A stretch of 62,158 nucleotides of DNA, counting the filler, from Choristocarpus tenellus KU-1152 (taxonomy: Eukaryota > Protista > Phaeophyceae): assembly GCA_964200185.2 (NCBI GenBank). It is 5 parts of 5 records of this genome, joined end to end, with 100 filler letters (N's around TTAATTAATTAA, not from the genome) between each part and the next. Parts side by side here need not be neighbours in the genome. Positions count along the whole stretch, not along the records: positions 1 to 23,797 come from CAXNAD020000235.1; 4 more parts are not named here. One strand, written 5' to 3'. Each line of letters begins with the position of its first letter. Position 1 is the first letter of the stretch. The notes under the pieces were generated by a model. The model did not search any database. It was not told the origin of the DNA and saw only the letters and a list, made by a program, of their open reading frames with translations. Shown here piece by piece: positions 211 to 22,082 of this stretch. Made by a program: the position numbers and the translations under genes.

Positions 211-425
211 AAATTACCATAGATTACTCCCCATAGATGTTTTGAGGGTCTTACACTCAACAGAGACGATTCCGACGAAATATACACCCTCCCTCTCACT
301 GCATGCTCCCCGAGCGCATTTGTGAAACCTCATGCCTGGTAACAAAGTAACATTCATACATCCATACCGTTGATGTCCTCGCGCTCATGTATTCCACCTC
401 CGCAGATAATTAAGCCATTCAGAGA

Positions 426-935
426 GTGAAACACGAGCAAAGCGAGTCTGTGCGACTTCTCCACAAGACAGGGGAACGAGAGTTTGACCTCCCAGTCCAT
501 TGGCTTCCCACCGATGGCAATGGCGCTGGAACTAGCACCAGCGACGTCGAAGACAATGACCAGGGCGAATGTTCGGGTGGGGGGGTTAATCTCATTGGTA
601 GTGACAATGATCTCGGTGGGCTCGAGGAAACACACTCTTCCTCATCGGACAGTGACAAGGAAGAACCTGGCTCCCGTCAACGGGGTTGGCTTCGTACAAC
701 GTTGACATCGGGGAACTATGGAAACCTGTTCTCGGTGCAGGAAGGCAGGTTTGCCTTTTTTGTGGCAACGGAGGCGCCGCTCTTGGTCGGCAAAATCCTA
801 GTGGAGCGCGTCTGCGAGGATGGGGAGAGTGGGATGGATATTCACTGGCTTCGGCCGACCAGTGATCACACACGTGACAACGCCGCGACCCTAACCCTTG
901 AGAAATATGGCAAAAGTAATTTTGTGGAAGGAGTG
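426..935 (+). pseudogene. GC-rich ORF fragment of unknown function (acidic linker plus a FAFFV...LLVGKI...IHWLRP module), possibly transposon-encoded; truncated at the junction with foreign DNA
   Basis: About 170 open, protein-like codons. Composition switches abruptly to AT-rich after ~935, where the ORF tail is not coherent with the upstream part. GTG start; no family recognised. Confidence 0.35.
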
Positions 936-1086
936 AAAGTACTCGGGAGCAACAACTTCAGTACTGCTCTCACCATTGCAAACGCGTTTGATAATGATAT
1001 CATTTTCTGTCATATACAAACAAAACTAAAATTCCAGTACCTATCAAACATGATTCAGGCCTTCCCAAGAAGAGGTACCGATAACA

Positions 1087-1263
1087 ATATATAGAAAACT
1101 TGGGCAAGATTATGATATGGCTACAAAACACCTTGAGGAAGCAATATCAATATATGATAAAATATCATCTAACTCCCCGAGAAAAGCACTAGCACTTACT
1201 CATCTTGGTAATACTTACAGAACTCTTGGAGAATTTACAAAAGCAGCTGATGCGCTAAATTCT
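1087..1263 (+). pseudogene. Bacterial-like tetratricopeptide repeat (TPR) protein fragment
   Basis: Translates IYRKLGQDYDMATKHLEEAISIYDKISSNSPRKALALTHLGNTYRTLGEFTKAADALNS, about 1.5 canonical TPR units (A..L..LG..Y..LG.Y..A...L..A..I). AT-rich codons, no start codon, no splice signals. Confidence 0.7.
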
Positions 1264-1338
1264 AATATTATTATCTTTTTGTAACAAACTATCTGTTTTG
1301 TGAATAAATTTGTGAGGTGGTTGCTTTATAGTTTCCTT

Positions 1339-1550
1339 AGAACCTGTTTAAAGTCTTTTTACCAACAACACAGAAAAAGCGAGTACCATATTTTGTAAAC
1401 TTGTAGCAAATATCGCTACAAGTTGATTATGAAAAAGCAGTTTTTCCATAATCTTCAGCATTTATCCAACCAAGAAAACTACCTCTCTACAACCCATCTT
1501 TTGGGAATAACCTTAAAAACATGCATCTCACTGCGCTTTACTACCTCTAC
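1339..1550 (-). mobile_element. IS5-family insertion sequence remnant: transposase C-terminus plus terminal inverted repeat
   Basis: Minus strand reads VEVVKRSEMHVFKVIPKRWVVER*FSWLDKC*RLWKNC (frameshift) FATSLQNMVLAFSVLLVKRL*, matching the IS5 DDE tail motif PKRWVVERSFAWL...RRLWKNCE. The stop is followed directly by ACAGGTTC|TAA (IR end plus TWA-type target). Two stops and one frameshift. Confidence 0.85.
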
Positions 1551-1840
1551 CAAAGGAACAGATAGAGGCTGCAGAAAATGATCTTATTGCAAGTATAATC
1601 TCAGAGATCACTAAATCCGATTCATATAGCAATTCTAGTAAAGCACTTAATATAGTTTTAAATACGATAGTTAAGTCTGGTATTAAATTGGATAGCAAAC
1701 AATTTCAGCAATTAACAGGGATTCTTAGTGATGCAAACTATTCTGAATCCAGAGAAAAAATCTGCAAAATTCTAATTAGCAGTGAATATAAGCCGGAGCA
1801 AGAAGAAATAACAGCTCTAATGCCATTACTAGATACTTTT
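1550..1840 (+). pseudogene. AT-rich bacterial-like helical protein fragment (start-less open frame of ~100 codons)
   Basis: PKEQIEAAENDLIASIISEITKSDSYSNSSKALNIVLNTIVKSGIKLDSKQFQQLTGILSDANYSESREKICKILISSEYKPEQEEITALMPLLDT; open to TGA at 1862-1864. Codon usage is A/T-ending, unlike host exons. Confidence 0.5.
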
Positions 1841-3136
1841 CTGTCGTTATCAGTTCAATGGTGAGGCACCCAATCAAAATCAGTCATCTTCACCGTGTCT
1901 GCTTGGGGTCATCCTAAGTCAATCACGCCTTCAACAACCAAGGTCTGAGGTAGCAGCCGTGTGGGAAATTGGTCTATGGGAAAAAAAGACAAAAGTGCCC
2001 AACTTACGACCAAACGGAACTGCAGGCACTCGCAAAAATGCATCGCAAGAACTTGACCCTCACCTCAAACAACAAGTAAGCACAGTGATTACTACTGTAA
2101 CAGTTATATCCCATTTCCCAAGGTGTAGTGGTTCAGGTGTCACCTTTTGCATCTCACATATCCAGGAGTTGATGCATAGCATTCCACAAATTTTAAGGGC
2201 TACCTACTTAGAGGTAGTAAGGAACAAAGTATCATCGAGTCTGTGTGAGTCTGTGTGTAAAGAGTTAAACTTGGACTATGCAGAGGTGTCTCGCAGTGGT
2301 CTGGTTGTGAATGTGCCTTGCTTGAAATCTAATGAACGCACCTGAAGCTCTCATATTCCTATTGCAATATTTTGCTGCTGTTTACACTCATGCTTGCAAG
2401 TTAAAAGTGTGTTATCACATCATCCACAACAAACAAAAAATCACAACCAGCTCCATCACAAAATATTTATCATTGAACACCATCTGCAAATATTTTCTTC
2501 TTTTGATACATCTCTCTCATCTAATGCTGCCACATCAGGTTCACCTACACCAAACAATTATCTTCTTGACAATAAAGTATCTGCAACTAATACTGGTACC
2601 AGTGTGACTACAGAGGACTCTCAAATAGGAGTAAGAGATAAGTCTACAAGTCTTTCTCCCTTCATGGAGTTACCTTTGGTCTGCACCAGGGATGATTGAT
2701 GCAAGAGGGTTCTCTTTGCATCAAGTGTCGATAAATACAATAAAAAACCTATCGAGTCACTTTGGAGCTCTAACCCATGCCTTTCTTTGTCTTCCTGCAT
2801 GCATCATGTTCTATAGTACCCTGGAGCACTACAGCACACCGCCAGCATGGTGGTGCATGTACTTAAGAGTAAGGCATTAACTTAACCACAAGCTTATATA
2901 TCATGCAGCAGCATCCAAAAACTGGAAGATTTCAAATAAGAGAAAGTCTTAAATAGGATTGTTTCCTATGGTGTATCATTGAAGACTATGGTCGTTATCT
3001 TGTGTCTTGTCTATTGGAGGTGTGCCTCCCATGTAGGTTTTCTATTTAAACATCCTACCACCACCATACCCAAATATAGTTAGTGGTACATAAATATAGA
3101 TTTAGTCCCCTTCCCATCCCAGCTCCCTCCCCCCAC

Positions 3137-6100
3137 CCCTAAATATGTTTGAACAGCAAACGCACCTTCAGCCCCTTCTTCAATAACCATGCCAATGTTG
3201 GCTCCTGATGTACGCCTACCAAGAACACCATGGTGGGCAAACGGGAGGTGTGCAGGGTCTTTGCCATTGCCAGGAAATCCAAAGTTGAGATACAGGGAGA
3301 GAGAGGGGAGACACAAGGAAACAAGAGGGCATTTAGAACATCTTTCAGCTCAAGTCGAGGCAGGTGAGCATAGACAAACTGTCATATACCATCAGATACC
3401 ATCAGATATCATCAGATACCATCATATACCATCAAAACAAACTGCACCACACCATTGGTACAGACACCTCTACAAGACACTCCCCTATTGTAGACCCCTG
3501 CTTCAGCACATGACAATGCATTATCTTTTACTTTGAACTGCCAACGCCCTGTCCGTGCATATGGGAAACACATGACTGCTACCAACAAATCCATATACAA
3601 TTCACAGGATGAAGGGTACGAGCTTTTCCCCTCTCCTTCCCTGAAAAGTCCATCCTCAGCACTACCATATAAGCAAATGTATCCCTCCTCAGTCCTGCAT
3701 CCATTCTGCACACCTCCTAAGTTCTCCATCAGTGTATCCCAACCATAGGGCAAGTCACGCATGTACCAATTTCCGTCGTATTCTGGGTCATCCATTTCTG
3801 CGACAATGGCGGGGTGCTTAAGCTTGCTGGCCTCCACCCCCTCAGGGGAGCTGTCTGGCCAGACCCAGAGCTTCTCCTGCACAACCTTTGTGGGCACAGA
3901 CCTAACACAGGCACTGCAAAAAAACGAGGTTTGACAGGGGTTAAGGCGGAGAGGGAGGGGAAGGAAGAGAACCAAGAGGATTGTGGGATGTATGGGTATC
4001 TAACTTGAATGTATTGCCCCAGTATAATAGTGTGCGCATGGCATGTATCCTCCACATCAGCCTTCATGTGTTTCAGCTCTACACAGTAGCAATGACCATC
4101 CCTGCAATCCTGACACAATCCAGACTTCACCTCAATTAGAGCATCAAAATTCGTATGACATACTCCAAATGAATGCATTCTGCCCCTCCTTACAAAGATC
4201 TGACCTCTGGGGTTCCTTGTTTCGTGTTAGGGTATACTTGTTGATACATGGTACATTGAAGGACTTCGATACAATAGGTAGATTGAAGTACTTTGATATA
4301 ATCTCCTGAAATTCACAATACCAGTTGTGTTATCTCTACCAATTGAACAGTTACATTAATCTAGCATGCGATAGTGGCACCCTTAAACCAAGCGATATTA
4401 TCATGGCAAGATTTATCCTGAACACAACAGTACAAAAATATCCATAGCGAGGCAAGTAACTCTGGCATACTACTATAGAGATCTTGAAATAGTCAACACA
4501 TTGGAACAGATTGAAACCTGGGATTGTGTACATTGAAGGCATGAGATAAAAGGCAGAGCACAGCCCCACCTTAGGCAACCACCTCACAAACGTAACACCT
4601 GGCTAGGTAACTGCTAATACAGATTAAAGGAAAGGGGAATACATCTTGGGGCATTGACTCGCCTAACATACAAGGACCAATCGAACACTCCTATGAGGTT
4701 GCTGAGCATCTCCTTCATCACATACTTGAGTGTTACTACTAATCCCTAACCCCCCTAACCCTAAGTGATTACTAAAAAAAAAGAACAGCAAAAAGAACAT
4801 TTTTTCAGTGTGTCATGTTCACGTTATCAACAAATAATAGTAGCCAGCACTTATTTTCACAAAACCTTACAAATAAAGCGCTGGCTTGTGTTGGTTGCCA
4901 CCGAAATCTGCATGACTGTTTCTTCTCAGACAAAGACAGGTGTTAAAACACTCTTATTCCACATTTCATCCCATAGAAGCAACAAGTGATTCATTGAAAT
5001 CAATAATCTCTTGCTAACAATAAGAATTGGTCAACCACAATAGGGTCGCACCCAGATTGCATCAATTCCATCACACTTCCAACCCCGTTGTTCCTTTTTG
5101 TATTATTATATTATTAACCCGCATGCACCAAACTGGGCATAAAACCAAACCCCCTCACCTCCACAGGTATGTATGTAGGAGTAGATATTCTCAACCTACG
5201 GGATTTTCTTGAAGACCTAAGGAGTAAAGTCCTGTCACCTTATCAGGTAGTCTCTACAATGCTGCTTACACACAGAGAGGAAAGCTTACAGCAATGAGGC
5301 CCTTGAACCACCAGCAGTAATACTCAAAGCCTAGTGTCAAGGAAAAATGCCTCCCAAATGAAAACTATTCGAGAGAGTCCAAGACTTTGCCTGAGACCAT
5401 GTTGCACCCCAAAAGCAACCACCAGTAGACAGAGCACAGATCATACACGAGGGCATAACAATGAACCACAAAGATATCCTTACTGGCTCTCTCTGAACCC
5501 TTCATGCCAAACTCATTGTAACTCCTCAAATCCCTTACACTGTCCCGGTAAATGCATCCTTGTCTCCAACGGCACTGCACATCAGAACACATCAATACCA
5601 AAACTCTCACCGCTTGGATCCTGTCGCATTCTCTTCAGTCCCTGCTCGGGCCTGTGGGATCTTTCCGCAGCTCCCATCCCTAACCACCACGGGGAACAAA
5701 AGGAGGACAGAAGTAACATCAGACAGTAACATCAGACAGCGCAGGAGGAAGTCACAGGGTCAGCTCTTTAGCTTTTACATCTCTATGCCGAGTAGCACAA
5801 GCCGGAACCTCTGACTAGACTAGACTTGTGACTTGTGACTAGACCTTCCCCGAGTAAGGTCAAGACTGAGCCAACAATACTCCCAGGGGAAAGCAAAAAG
5901 GAAACAGTGATAAGAGTGATGGCATAGCTTATCCACCTAAGAAGTAGTTATAGAAAAAAAAAGAGTACGCTGTATAATATCGAAAGGGGGAGAGTCGAAT
6001 GAGACTCCCTTGGCATTCTCATCCTCACCAACTCCCACTTTCTACAAAGCAAGAGAGGAACTAAGCACATTCCAGAACCATTCCTACTCTCCCAGCTAGG

Positions 6101-16310: not shown

Positions 16311-18759
16311 TTACTTCCGGCCACCAGCTGCCACAATCTTGCCACGGCGCCCTGTGGTCTTAGTGTGCTGCCCACGCACACGCACACCCCAGTAGTGACG
16401 GATACCACGGTGGGAACTGCGAGAAAAAAAAGTAAGACATTTTCAGTTTGGATGACAACATCATCAGGGGAGGAATTGCAAGGAGAAATCAGTTATAGCT
16501 AGCACAAAAAAGATGAAGCGCACGTCCTTAACTTTAACAAGGAGAACCCTCAGTGCACACTGACCAAAGAAGAGACTATCGGGGTGACTGGTCAGCATGT
16601 AGACATAACATCGCCGTGGTTGTTTTCACTTTACTCTTGCTTTGCAACAAGTATATGACTTACAGCCCCCATTGGTTTGCCCGGAGATGGGAAGGGATAC
16701 ATTGAGGCTTACCGAATCTTCTTCAGTCGCTCGAGGTCATCACGCAGCTTGGCATCAATGCTCTGTGAGGAGATCTGGGAGAACTTTCCCGTCTTCCAGT
16801 CCTTCTGCCTGTTCAAGAACCAGTCAGGGATCTTGAACTGACGGGGGGTTAGGATAATCGCCACCAGCTTCTCAATCTCATCTGCAGTAAGCTCACCAGC
16901 CCTGAGCAAACACAGGGTAAGCAAGGACATTCCAATCACAAAAAAGGTGTGAAAAGGGTGCGTAGACGTGCTTGATGTTGTTTTAAGTTGAGAGAGGCAG
17001 AGTACATCAGATCTGAAACCAAGAACTGAGGTTAATAAATCTCGACACAGAGCAACTGTCCGTAAAAAGCAGCCAGAAATACCAAGTACGCCCAGAAATG
17101 TTGTACAGATTAGTGTCAGGTACTTCTTAAAACCAAAGAGCTTTAACCAATGCCCCAAATAGAGATCACCTCAAACATGTATCTATATACTTGTCCCTTC
17201 ACCACTACTGGGTGTCAGTGCAATATCGAAAATTAATGAAGGTGAAAAAAAACAAAGATCAGCCAAACAAGTAACAGCTGTTTAATTGATGTCAACTCAT
17301 CTAGGCCTGTTTTAGGTGGGAAAACTCTGGAAAGGCTTGACTCTCAGTTGAAATAAAAGATGTGCAAGCATTCATAAGGCAACCATTCATCTATTCAAAC
17401 TAGCTGGACTGGAAAGTGCTTCAACTTATAAAGTATCAACTTCAACATCGTACCTCACGCCACTTGTAGAGGGAAGACAATTCAACATTAGCAATCATTG
17501 ACATGCCACACTCTTGAGTATGCTACATATAATCCAAATTTCCGTCGATTATTAGCCCTTCAAAGTCAGCTGGTACATCCCTATTTGAACCACACACCAT
17601 AGAAAGTGTGACAAAATAAATATTTTGAGTTACGGGCTGTCAGGCTTCTCAACACCTCACTGACCTCACCCCAAGTCTCAGGTCACTTATGGAATGGAGT
17701 ATGTGAAACTCAAAAGTGTCAAATTATGTTCCCATTACCTTCACCACACTACAACCACCGGTCTTACTGTTACCCCATTAATCCTCTCAGAAGTCATGAC
17801 TGGAACGAGTTGCATGCCTCAAGGTCCAGTATGTATTTGACATTTCACAGTGCCACCAATTGGGTGCATTCCTATCATAAAAATCAGCAGCAAATTCACA
17901 AAGCTCTCACTAGAAGTCCAGGATTCAAGAGTGTTATGTTCTAGACACAGTTGAACATGTCTCCACTGTTGCATTTTCCATGAACGCTTATATATTTCCA
18001 TCCCACGCCCACATCCCTCCTCCACGTCTCCTCTCTGGCGGCTGACCAGCCCCTATTACTCCATTCATCCCTTTCCCTTGGCATTCCCAATAAGGAATTA
18101 AATTAGACTGCAAGGTACAGCAGGTCAAAGTCACTGAGATCTATATTCTCCCAAAAAGGGGACCAAGATCACGATGACTTTTCGACAAGCCGGTCACATA
18201 TTGACTCTGTCTACGACATTTTGTCTGTAACAAGGTTTCTTAGTATTAGATATTTTTCCACACAGTATCAATCACAGGGTAGGTCGGAGACTTGACTGTG
18301 TACGCTTCACCTTTTGTTGGGGTCGACTTCCGCCTTCTTACAGATGAGATTAGCAAAGCGGCGACCCACACCCTTGATGGAGGTTAGAGAGTACTGGACC
18401 TGTCGGCATGTGCGTAGGGATCATCGGGCAAGAGCGTAAGGGTATCTTTATGAACTCAAGAAATTTGAAATCCCACAATGTGCCCCATCTTGATGGATGG
18501 ACAATTCTGCACCTAGTGCGTGGTAGTAAAGCATGTAGATTGCACAGAAACCACGGAACTTGAGGTACTCATCAAGGACATAGGTTTGCTGAACTACCTA
18601 GAATACACGCAAAAGAGTATGTTCTTGTCGCAATCTTTTGTATCCGCAGCGAAGGAGAAGCTATCTAGTGTCATGTCTTAGCCTTACCTTACGCCTGCCA
18701 TCGATGTTGGTATTGAGAATACGCAGAATATGCTGAAATTCCTGGGAGATGACGAGAGA
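16311..18759 (-). CDS. RPS18: 40S ribosomal protein S18 (uS13)
   Basis: Exons 18759-18688, 18399-18311, 16901-16713 and 16416-16311 splice in phase: [59 protein letters not shown]...[11 protein letters not shown]...[46 protein letters not shown]. The ATG sits on an upstream exon (candidates ATG|GT at 19046-19044 or 19148-19146). Confidence 0.98.
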
Positions 18760-21992: not shown

Positions 21993-22082
21993 ACGACGTT
22001 GATGTAGGGGTAATATATATCTCTTCAAAGGTTATGCCTGAGGTTCAAGTCCCCGTTGTCGTCGGTTGACTGGTACTTTTTA
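21993..22082 (+). pseudogene. Degenerate tRNA-like element (tRNA pseudogene or SINE head)
   Basis: ACGACG pairs with TGTCGT as an acceptor stem; A-box-like TTGATGTAGGGG; B-box GGTTCAAGTCC; loop CTTCAAA; downstream T6 run. Several stem mismatches. Confidence 0.4.

Follow-up and report, generated by a model that had tools for sequence, protein, structure and literature searches.

A mosaic of decayed bacterial gene and mobile-element fragments in a nuclear contig of the alga Choristocarpus tenellus

Results

Layout of an AT-rich island on contig C235

The window analysed here is a stretch of 62,158 nucleotides from Choristocarpus tenellus KU-1152 (Phaeophyceae; assembly GCA_964200185.2), composed of five parts joined end to end, of which positions 1–23797 represent contig C235 (CAXNAD020000235.1). 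The assembly comprises 164 Mb in 27,310 contigs. Near the start of C235 lies an AT-rich island of ~0.9 kb (942–1864), with a GC content of 0.339, as compared to 0.528 on its left and 0.437 on its right; the drop spans about 932–1864. Six-frame translation and searches resolved the island into five parts in alternating orientation, most of which are scraps of bacterial genes or mobile elements, including a group II intron, a tetratricopeptide repeat (TPR) gene and an insertion sequence (IS) of the IS5 family. The features are as follows.

200–931, + strand: truncated copy of a host repeat (~92% identity to seven other copies)
932–941, no strand: ten bases at the join between repeat and foreign DNA, matching neither side
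942–1083, − strand: group II intron scrap, with the upstream non-coding region and the first ~24 codons of ltrA (blastn against a plasmid of Candidatus (Ca.) Bandiella woodruffii)
1084–1275, + strand: internal TPR scrap of NTPase-plus-TPR type, ~64 codons (TPR_12 and a Rickettsiales protein match)
1276–1338, no strand: AT-rich spacer of 63 bp (no relatives)
1339–1550, − strand: decayed C-terminal tail of an IS5-family transposase (translation, assembly copies and DDE_Tnp_1 on the C362 copy)
1551–1864, + strand: 3′ part of an orphan gene, 104 codons, with its stop at 1862–1864 (metagenome proteins P0002 and P0001)
1865–23797, no strand: unique host nuclear DNA (zero-difference contigs in three runs; the flank occurs once in the assembly)

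None of the pieces is complete; each derives from the interior or the end of a larger gene or mobile element. An earlier note, made from this sequence without database searches, had named four pieces, all of which lie where it placed them; its list was incomplete, since it missed the intron scrap, and the "short open frame" that it saw at 1262–1336 (−) matches nothing and is better called a spacer. The GC content of 1264–1338 is 0.253, and 1276–1338 has no relatives in the plasmid, assembly or Rickettsiales searches. The same note had seen no start codons. The TPR frame does hold an ATG at 1117, but this Met is internal and is conserved in the parent protein. The longest stop-free run in the patch, of 115 codons, was attained in 1.5% of 5,000 composition-matched simulations (first-order Markov; P = 0.015), and the homologies described below are stronger evidence of gene remnants than open-frame length. 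Judged by their truncations and stops, the scraps would be functionless in the alga, that is, dead DNA.

The intron and TPR scraps

At the DNA level, the patch was compared with 401 Rickettsiales, 301 Chlamydiota and 401 broadly sampled alphaproteobacterial genomes (~1,100 genomes). The Rickettsiales matched the intron scrap (two genomes, 77% identity), the TPR scrap (one genome, 71% identity) and the IS5 tail. The Chlamydiota and the Alphaproteobacteria matched the IS5 tail only, in the latter case through two genomes that are part of the Rickettsiales set as well.

The intron scrap is 77.4% identical (blastn, E 4e-18) to the start of ltrA on a plasmid of Ca. Bandiella woodruffii, its sole match among 72,556 plasmids. 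The matching region lies in an annotated intron, and the scrap corresponds to the sequence just upstream of ltrA together with ~24 codons, the ltrA start codon being the ATG at 1013–1011. It is broken at both ends and represents 142 bp of the interior of an element whose usual length is >2 kb. Of the features that define a group II intron, the ribozyme domains I–VI and the intron-encoded reverse transcriptase, only these 142 bp around the ltrA start remain, and an Rfam scan of the window returned no group II intron domain. No match to the scrap was found at the DNA level in the 301 Chlamydiota or in the non-Rickettsiales Alphaproteobacteria. An organelle origin was considered and rejected, as neither the plastid contig C1 nor the mitochondrial contig C71 carries a group II reverse transcriptase; the sole remnant of such an enzyme in the assembly is a 58-aa scrap on C11722.

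The TPR scrap, which had been read as a TPR fragment at 1087–1263 (+), scores 38.2 bits against Pfam TPR_12 (cut-off 30.1; E 1.6e-9). It is 63% identical at the amino acid level (E 7e-26) to residues 484–547 of a 785-aa NTPase-plus-TPR protein from the single matching Rickettsiales genome (G071), and retains ~64 of the 785 residues of its parent, with no stops. Its plasmid matches are confined to Ca. Megaira polyxenophila and Ca. Paracaedimonas acanthamoebae, so that, among the 72,556 plasmids, the intron and TPR scraps match those of protist symbionts only (Ca. Bandiella, Ca. Megaira and Ca. Paracaedimonas). The TPR scrap has no match in the 301 Chlamydiota or in the other sampled Alphaproteobacteria, and a second copy was not found in the assembly.

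The IS5 tail and the orphan piece

The IS5 tail, rightly taken for a transposase remnant in the earlier reading, comprises the last ~60 codons of the transposase, and four stops interrupt the window copy. Relative to an open copy on contig C362, which matches DDE_Tnp_1 (E 3.5e-7), it contains two in-frame stops, an 18-bp insertion and a frameshift. An IS5 element has a complete DDE transposase and both terminal repeats; here, profile positions ~140–199 of 200 remain, and no full IS5 copy is present in the assembly. The tail occurs again on C362 and C15560, from which the window copy differs at few bases besides the insertion (88% identity by blastn, counting the indel). All three copies end alike at 1339 despite their different flanks, and 1339 is therefore the natural terminus of the element. 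The break at 1550 is specific to the window, as the C362 copy continues into transposase sequence. At the protein level, the tail is 80–84% identical to elements of Chlamydiae, Wolbachia and Dehalococcoidia, the best match being in a Chlamydiae metagenome-assembled genome (MAG; 84%); given this spread, it was rejected as a donor marker.

The orphan piece runs for 104 codons to its stop, in agreement with the ~100-codon frame previously noticed near 1550–1840 (+). An exhaustive protein search and a word search yielded two short metagenome proteins as its sole relatives: P0002 (88 aa, on a contig of an ENA metagenome), which shares 90% identity over the first 30 residues, and P0001 (from a TARA metagenome), with 30% identity. 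Because P0002 carries 55 more upstream residues that are absent from the window piece, the 5′ end of the orphan gene is missing here. On its metagenome contig, the P0002 gene sits 7 bp after the preceding gene, a spacing suggestive of bacterial-style packing, and the orphan piece is probably from a helical, bacterial-type gene. An 82-bp scrap of the same gene (89% identity) lies inside an AT-rich island of contig C1543. The frame has no match in Pfam, in the plasmids (tblastn), in viral contigs or in JGI metagenome contigs, and nothing significant in the 401 Rickettsiales genomes; the ESM Atlas returned only unnamed, uninformative clusters.

Related islands elsewhere in the genome

A scan of the assembly for similar fragments, proposed in the earlier note, placed the patch among many islands. 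The island of C1543 (C1543:8000–13259, at about 500–5000 therein) extends over 4.5 kb at ~26% GC, with host-like DNA on both sides. It holds no open frame >81 codons and contains a scrap of IS982. Its repeats are short and palindromic, matching in both orientations, and some are 85% identical to the Ca. Megaira polyxenophila plasmid; a resemblance to Rickettsia palindromic elements is apparent. Pieces of the C1543 island (40–90 bp, 85–100% identity) recur on >20 other contigs, several of them within small AT-rich islands with host-like flanks. Islands were also seen on C8338, C25635, C1792, C11722, C6935, C25702 and C13471, with partial transposases on C6935, C25702 and C13471. Since many of the scraps are at contig ends, the true islands may be larger than assembled. 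Apart from a match to group II domains D1–D4 on C11722 (Rfam), no tRNA or known RNA was found in the related islands.

Two of these loci carry further sequences. On C15560 (3943–4036 of the extracted locus), the frame MRTYSQDLRDRVISNYNTGKYQIKELA directly abuts the IS5-tail copy at the contig end; by eye, it resembles the N-terminus of an IS630/Tc1-type transposase, and Pfam gives no match. C15560 is a putative second mosaic of bacterial mobile-element scraps. On C11722 (locus L027), an element of ~105 bp forms an inverted pair (641–747 and 1316–1422) around a 570-bp segment with group II intron and transposase scraps. The same element lies beside an IS5 scrap on C25702 (locus L128, ~1409–1502) and has a 78% identical relative in C3948. 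The element matches nothing in Rfam and does not correspond to a tRNA.

The donor

Bacterial relatives were thus found for the intron, TPR and IS5 scraps, and metagenome relatives alone for the orphan piece. This bears out the earlier view that the pieces are bacterial, and two of them indicate Rickettsiales-type symbionts of protists. By its sequence relatives, the donor is best described as a Rickettsiales-like, AT-rich intracellular bacterium rich in mobile elements. Ca. Megaira, which had been offered as an example of such a source, is a possible donor; the matches stop at the level of Rickettsiales, and the narrower attribution is not established.

It is very unlikely, in our judgement, that the donor was something other than a member of the Rickettsiales, such as a member of the Chlamydiae, Holosporales or Legionellales, or a giant virus with bacterial-type mobile elements. 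The Chlamydiae MAG that provides the best IS5 protein match speaks for such a donor, as do the second plasmid match of the TPR scrap, Ca. Paracaedimonas being a member of the Holosporales, the IS982 scrap of C1543, which is nearest to Aquicella, and the confinement of the orphan gene's relatives to metagenomes. However, among the sampled groups, the DNA-level matches of the intron and TPR scraps occur in Rickettsiales only, a search of viral contigs yielded no relative of the orphan frame, and pieces of the C1543 island share 85% identity with the repeats of a Ca. Megaira plasmid.

Linkage of the island to host nuclear DNA

The assembly includes one contig of mitochondrial and one of plastid origin, the latter with rbcS and an inverted pair of rRNA operons. 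A plastid-borne rbcS is the red-type arrangement of red algae and of algae with red-derived plastids, so the host is an alga with a red-type plastid, as expected for the algal contig that the earlier note assumed. Within C235, an exon of cytosolic ribosomal protein S18 lies at 16712–16894 (−; Ribosomal_S13, E 5.9e-14), the RPS18 gene being split by introns.

The read evidence consists of assembled contigs from three public runs (X1, X2 and X3; one study, three samples), aligned to 330–3300; coverage holes in these contigs prove nothing. From 1521 to 3300 and beyond, the run contigs show zero differences from the assembly, at depths of 17.9 (X1), 5.7 and 24.3 (X3), and one of them measures 21,320 bases. 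Zero-difference contigs from three samples therefore link single-copy host DNA to the complete orphan scrap and to the final 30 bases of the IS5 tail. In X3, the window-specific IS5 copy with its 18-bp insertion (1336–1512) is present at a depth of 26.9, close to the flank. Two X1 contigs, 1026–1226 and 1197–1383, bridge the intron/TPR and the TPR/spacer/IS5 joins. We treat the right half of the island as proven to be nuclear and the left half as probably so; nuclear integration of the patch is well supported from its right side.

Host-like flanks had been described on both sides. The right flank is unique host DNA, and its junction is seen at single-copy depth in all three runs; the left flank is a truncated host repeat with at least 150 copies, ~930 bp from the contig start.

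The left flank and the joins

The host repeat (200–931) is ~92% identical to seven other copies, all of which diverge at 931. Its reading frame, at 426–931 in the window, runs on past 931 in the other copies; the full frame in C5316 continues as FVEGWVHAGD.... Loose ends of the repeat at 931 read on as CTGGGTGCACGCC, so that 932–941 is foreign to the repeat. These ten bases are outside the intron relative as well, the intron match beginning at 942. At least 150 protein-level copies of the repeat are present in the assembly, and its summed read depth is in the tens of thousands. It does not resume within 6 kb. Copies elsewhere (e.g. C5316:6922–7425 and C12070:136–642) have open frames of up to 446 codons, and the encoded protein has an acidic C-terminal region and no Pfam match; the repeat is probably an uncharacterised transposable element. 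An AT-rich tandem array (19–200; periods of 21 and 42, about 3–6 copies) directly precedes it.

Within the island, the joins at 1083/1084 and 1550 interrupt both partners internally. The spacer/IS5 boundary at 1339 differs from them in being a natural IS end, as transposition inside a bacterium leaves. The proposal of the earlier note, that the fragments were ligated as filler at a chromosomal break, is for this reason not established. Nor is it established that the inner joins are unique to this locus: the bridging X1 contigs are 2–3× deeper than single-copy DNA, and one of them is a variant, which together hint at a second copy of these joins outside the assembly.

Relatives of the intron in the reads

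The reads contain relatives of the intron scrap that are ~92% identical to it and continue as genuine intron at both ends, with an LtrA-like translation that resembles the Bandiella sequence. Their summed contig depth is ~1e5 in X1 and X2 and 448 in X3. Since this intact intron is present in the reads and absent from the assembly, it belongs to a replicon or organism that was co-sequenced with the alga and is missing from the assembly. The 8% divergence, together with the stops and truncations, argues that the window copy is a relative integrated long ago, as opposed to a misassembled read. The symbiosis had been regarded as past or cryptic; with an intact intron relative at high depth in the raw data, the association may be current.

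An rRNA search of the assembly found no bacterial rRNA, only organelle genes and one nuclear mitochondrial-derived copy. This copy (C13979:600–978) was considered as a bacterial 16S donor marker and rejected, being 97% identical to the mitochondrial small-subunit rRNA of C71. No intact bacterial gene or intact DDE transposase was found in the assembly, where five partial DDE scraps are the only representatives of the latter.

A tRNA-like sequence at the far end of C235

At 21993–22063 (+), a 71-nt tRNA-like sequence with the anticodon UCA is called a tRNA-SeC by ARAGORN; its Rfam tRNA score of 27.7 bits falls slightly short of the gathering score (29). A eukaryotic selenocysteine tRNA would be longer; the sequence may represent a pseudogene or a tRNA that reads UGA.

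Discussion

Origin of the patch

We interpret the patch as dead DNA of a Rickettsiales-type, AT-rich intracellular bacterium that resides in the algal nuclear genome, probably through end-joining capture at a chromosome break of donor DNA that was partly mosaic already, and we give this reading a probability of roughly 0.55. The chromosome would have broken at the edge of a host-repeat copy, and bacterial DNA would have been captured by end-joining repair of the break. The joins at 931/942, 1083/1084 and 1550, which cut genes on both sides, would be illegitimate joins, and the spacer/IS5 boundary at 1339, which looks like an ordinary IS insertion within a bacterium, suggests that the captured DNA was in part a mosaic beforehand. 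The other islands of the genome may have been left by the same process.

Several observations count against this interpretation. The IS5 tail does not discriminate among Chlamydiae, Wolbachia and Dehalococcoidia, whose elements are equally similar to it, and the orphan piece matches no identifiable taxon. The patch is only ~940 bp from the contig end, and many of the other scraps are likewise at contig ends. The left join, 931/942, is bridged by none of the listed run contigs, because the sequences on both sides are high-copy. In the reads, 942–1025 is covered solely by variants with other letters, and 1084–1335 is covered in X1 alone, with no cover listed in X2 and X3. The X1 contigs over 1026–1383 have a depth of 40–50, as compared to 17.9 in the flank, and the contig 1026–1226 differs from the assembly at 3 of 201 bases. 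An allele or haplotype contig that lacks the insertion was not found in the assembly. Finally, the co-sequenced replicon raises the risk of a chimera.

The last point bears on a possible artefact, namely that at least 1–1520 was misjoined to a nuclear contig during assembly, from reads of a bacterium in the culture. The intact intron relative of X1 and X2, with its very high and sample-dependent depth and its absence from the assembly, would fit such an error, and so would the unbridged left join, the stretch seen in one run only and the closeness of the patch to the contig end. We nevertheless regard a chimera as improbable. In all three samples, the segment 1521–1864 is continuous with host DNA (21 kb) at single-copy depth; the broken, decayed state of the pieces does not resemble a living genome, and the scrap and the abundant intron diverge by ~8%. 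In addition, the islands on C1543 and C8338 have host-like DNA on both sides.

Another alternative concerns the time at which the mosaic formed. One contiguous piece of donor DNA may have been transferred, with the mosaic pre-existing in the bacterium, so that no shredding or ligation took place at integration except for the two outer joins. Genomes of Rickettsiales that are rich in mobile genetic elements (Orientia, REIS and Megaira-type) hold truncated transposases, intron remnants and fragments of TPR genes, which agrees with this possibility. The natural IS end at 1339, common to all three copies, also favors it, as does the excess depth of the X1 contigs over 1083/1084 and 1263–1339. The 3 differences in 201 bases of one bridging contig, against none in 1,780 flank bases, suggest a second copy of the join. 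On the other hand, the joins at 1083/1084 and 1550 cut both partners and coincide with no mobile-element end, and in none of the bacterial genomes and plasmids sampled do two of the pieces lie next to each other. We consider this course unlikely, though a more serious competitor than a misassembly, and retain end-joining capture of partly mosaic donor DNA as our interpretation.

Going one step further, we tentatively suggest, without holding it to be the probable case, that the alga harbors, or harbored until very recently, an undescribed, mobile-element-rich, Rickettsiales-like endosymbiont whose DNA entered the nucleus on repeated occasions, giving rise to dozens of AT-rich islands. The living donor would then still be in the raw reads, having been removed from the published assembly or never having been in it.

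Comparison with known systems

To our knowledge, Rickettsiales DNA in algal nuclei has been documented for very few hosts, Volvox being the clear case. The nucleus of Volvox carteri contains a block (~9 kb) of rickettsial genes that are incomplete and interspersed with host transposon sequence (2015, PMC4324946). This block was found in strains without the symbiont, most of its coding sequences are incomplete and were judged non-functional, and the authors infer a transfer from an endosymbiont (PMC4324946). It keeps the housekeeping genes 16S, murB, ddlB and ftsQ in the donor order (PMC4324946). The present patch is similar in that non-functional fragments of Rickettsiales origin reside in an algal nuclear genome. 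Unlike the one ~9-kb block of that green alga, it consists of pieces of 60–310 bp that alternate in orientation and come mostly from mobile elements; the host has a red-type plastid, and such pieces are spread over many loci.

Two further systems arise by the same kind of process. In the nuclear Wolbachia transfers (nuwts) of arthropods and nematodes, endosymbiont DNA lies in the host nucleus, often fragmentary, rearranged, decaying and near host repeats. The patch shares the fragmentary, decaying state, the nuclear location and the nearby host repeat, but its host is an alga, its donor is not Wolbachia, and the insertion is <1 kb. Mosaic nuclear insertions of mitochondrial or plastid DNA (NUMTs and NUPTs) are organelle DNA captured as filler at double-strand breaks, drawn from stretches that were not neighbours in the source, and they too consist of short fragments in mixed orientation that abut without long homology between nuclear flanks. 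In contrast to these, the source here is bacterial, at least one of the inner boundaries, the IS end, seems to have come from the donor, and the assembly offers no insertion-free allele for comparison. As to the elements themselves, the sequences derive from IS5 elements and from group II introns with LtrA-type reverse transcriptases; compared with the intact forms, 212 bp and 142 bp are left, with no catalytic DDE core, ribozyme domains or reverse-transcriptase domain, and both are therefore remnants. The transfer of DNA from bacteria to host nuclei is already known from other hosts, and it is the host lineage, the tiny fragments and the number of loci that set this case apart.

Islands of this kind can be trimmed in the belief that they are contaminants, or be taken for functional gene transfers; neither view applies here. 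If our interpretation is correct, the finding would flag a bacterium in the raw data that is unseen in the assembly, and the islands would provide a datable record of its association with the alga. Scattered over the genome of an alga with a red-type plastid, they would also widen the range of hosts for such symbioses.

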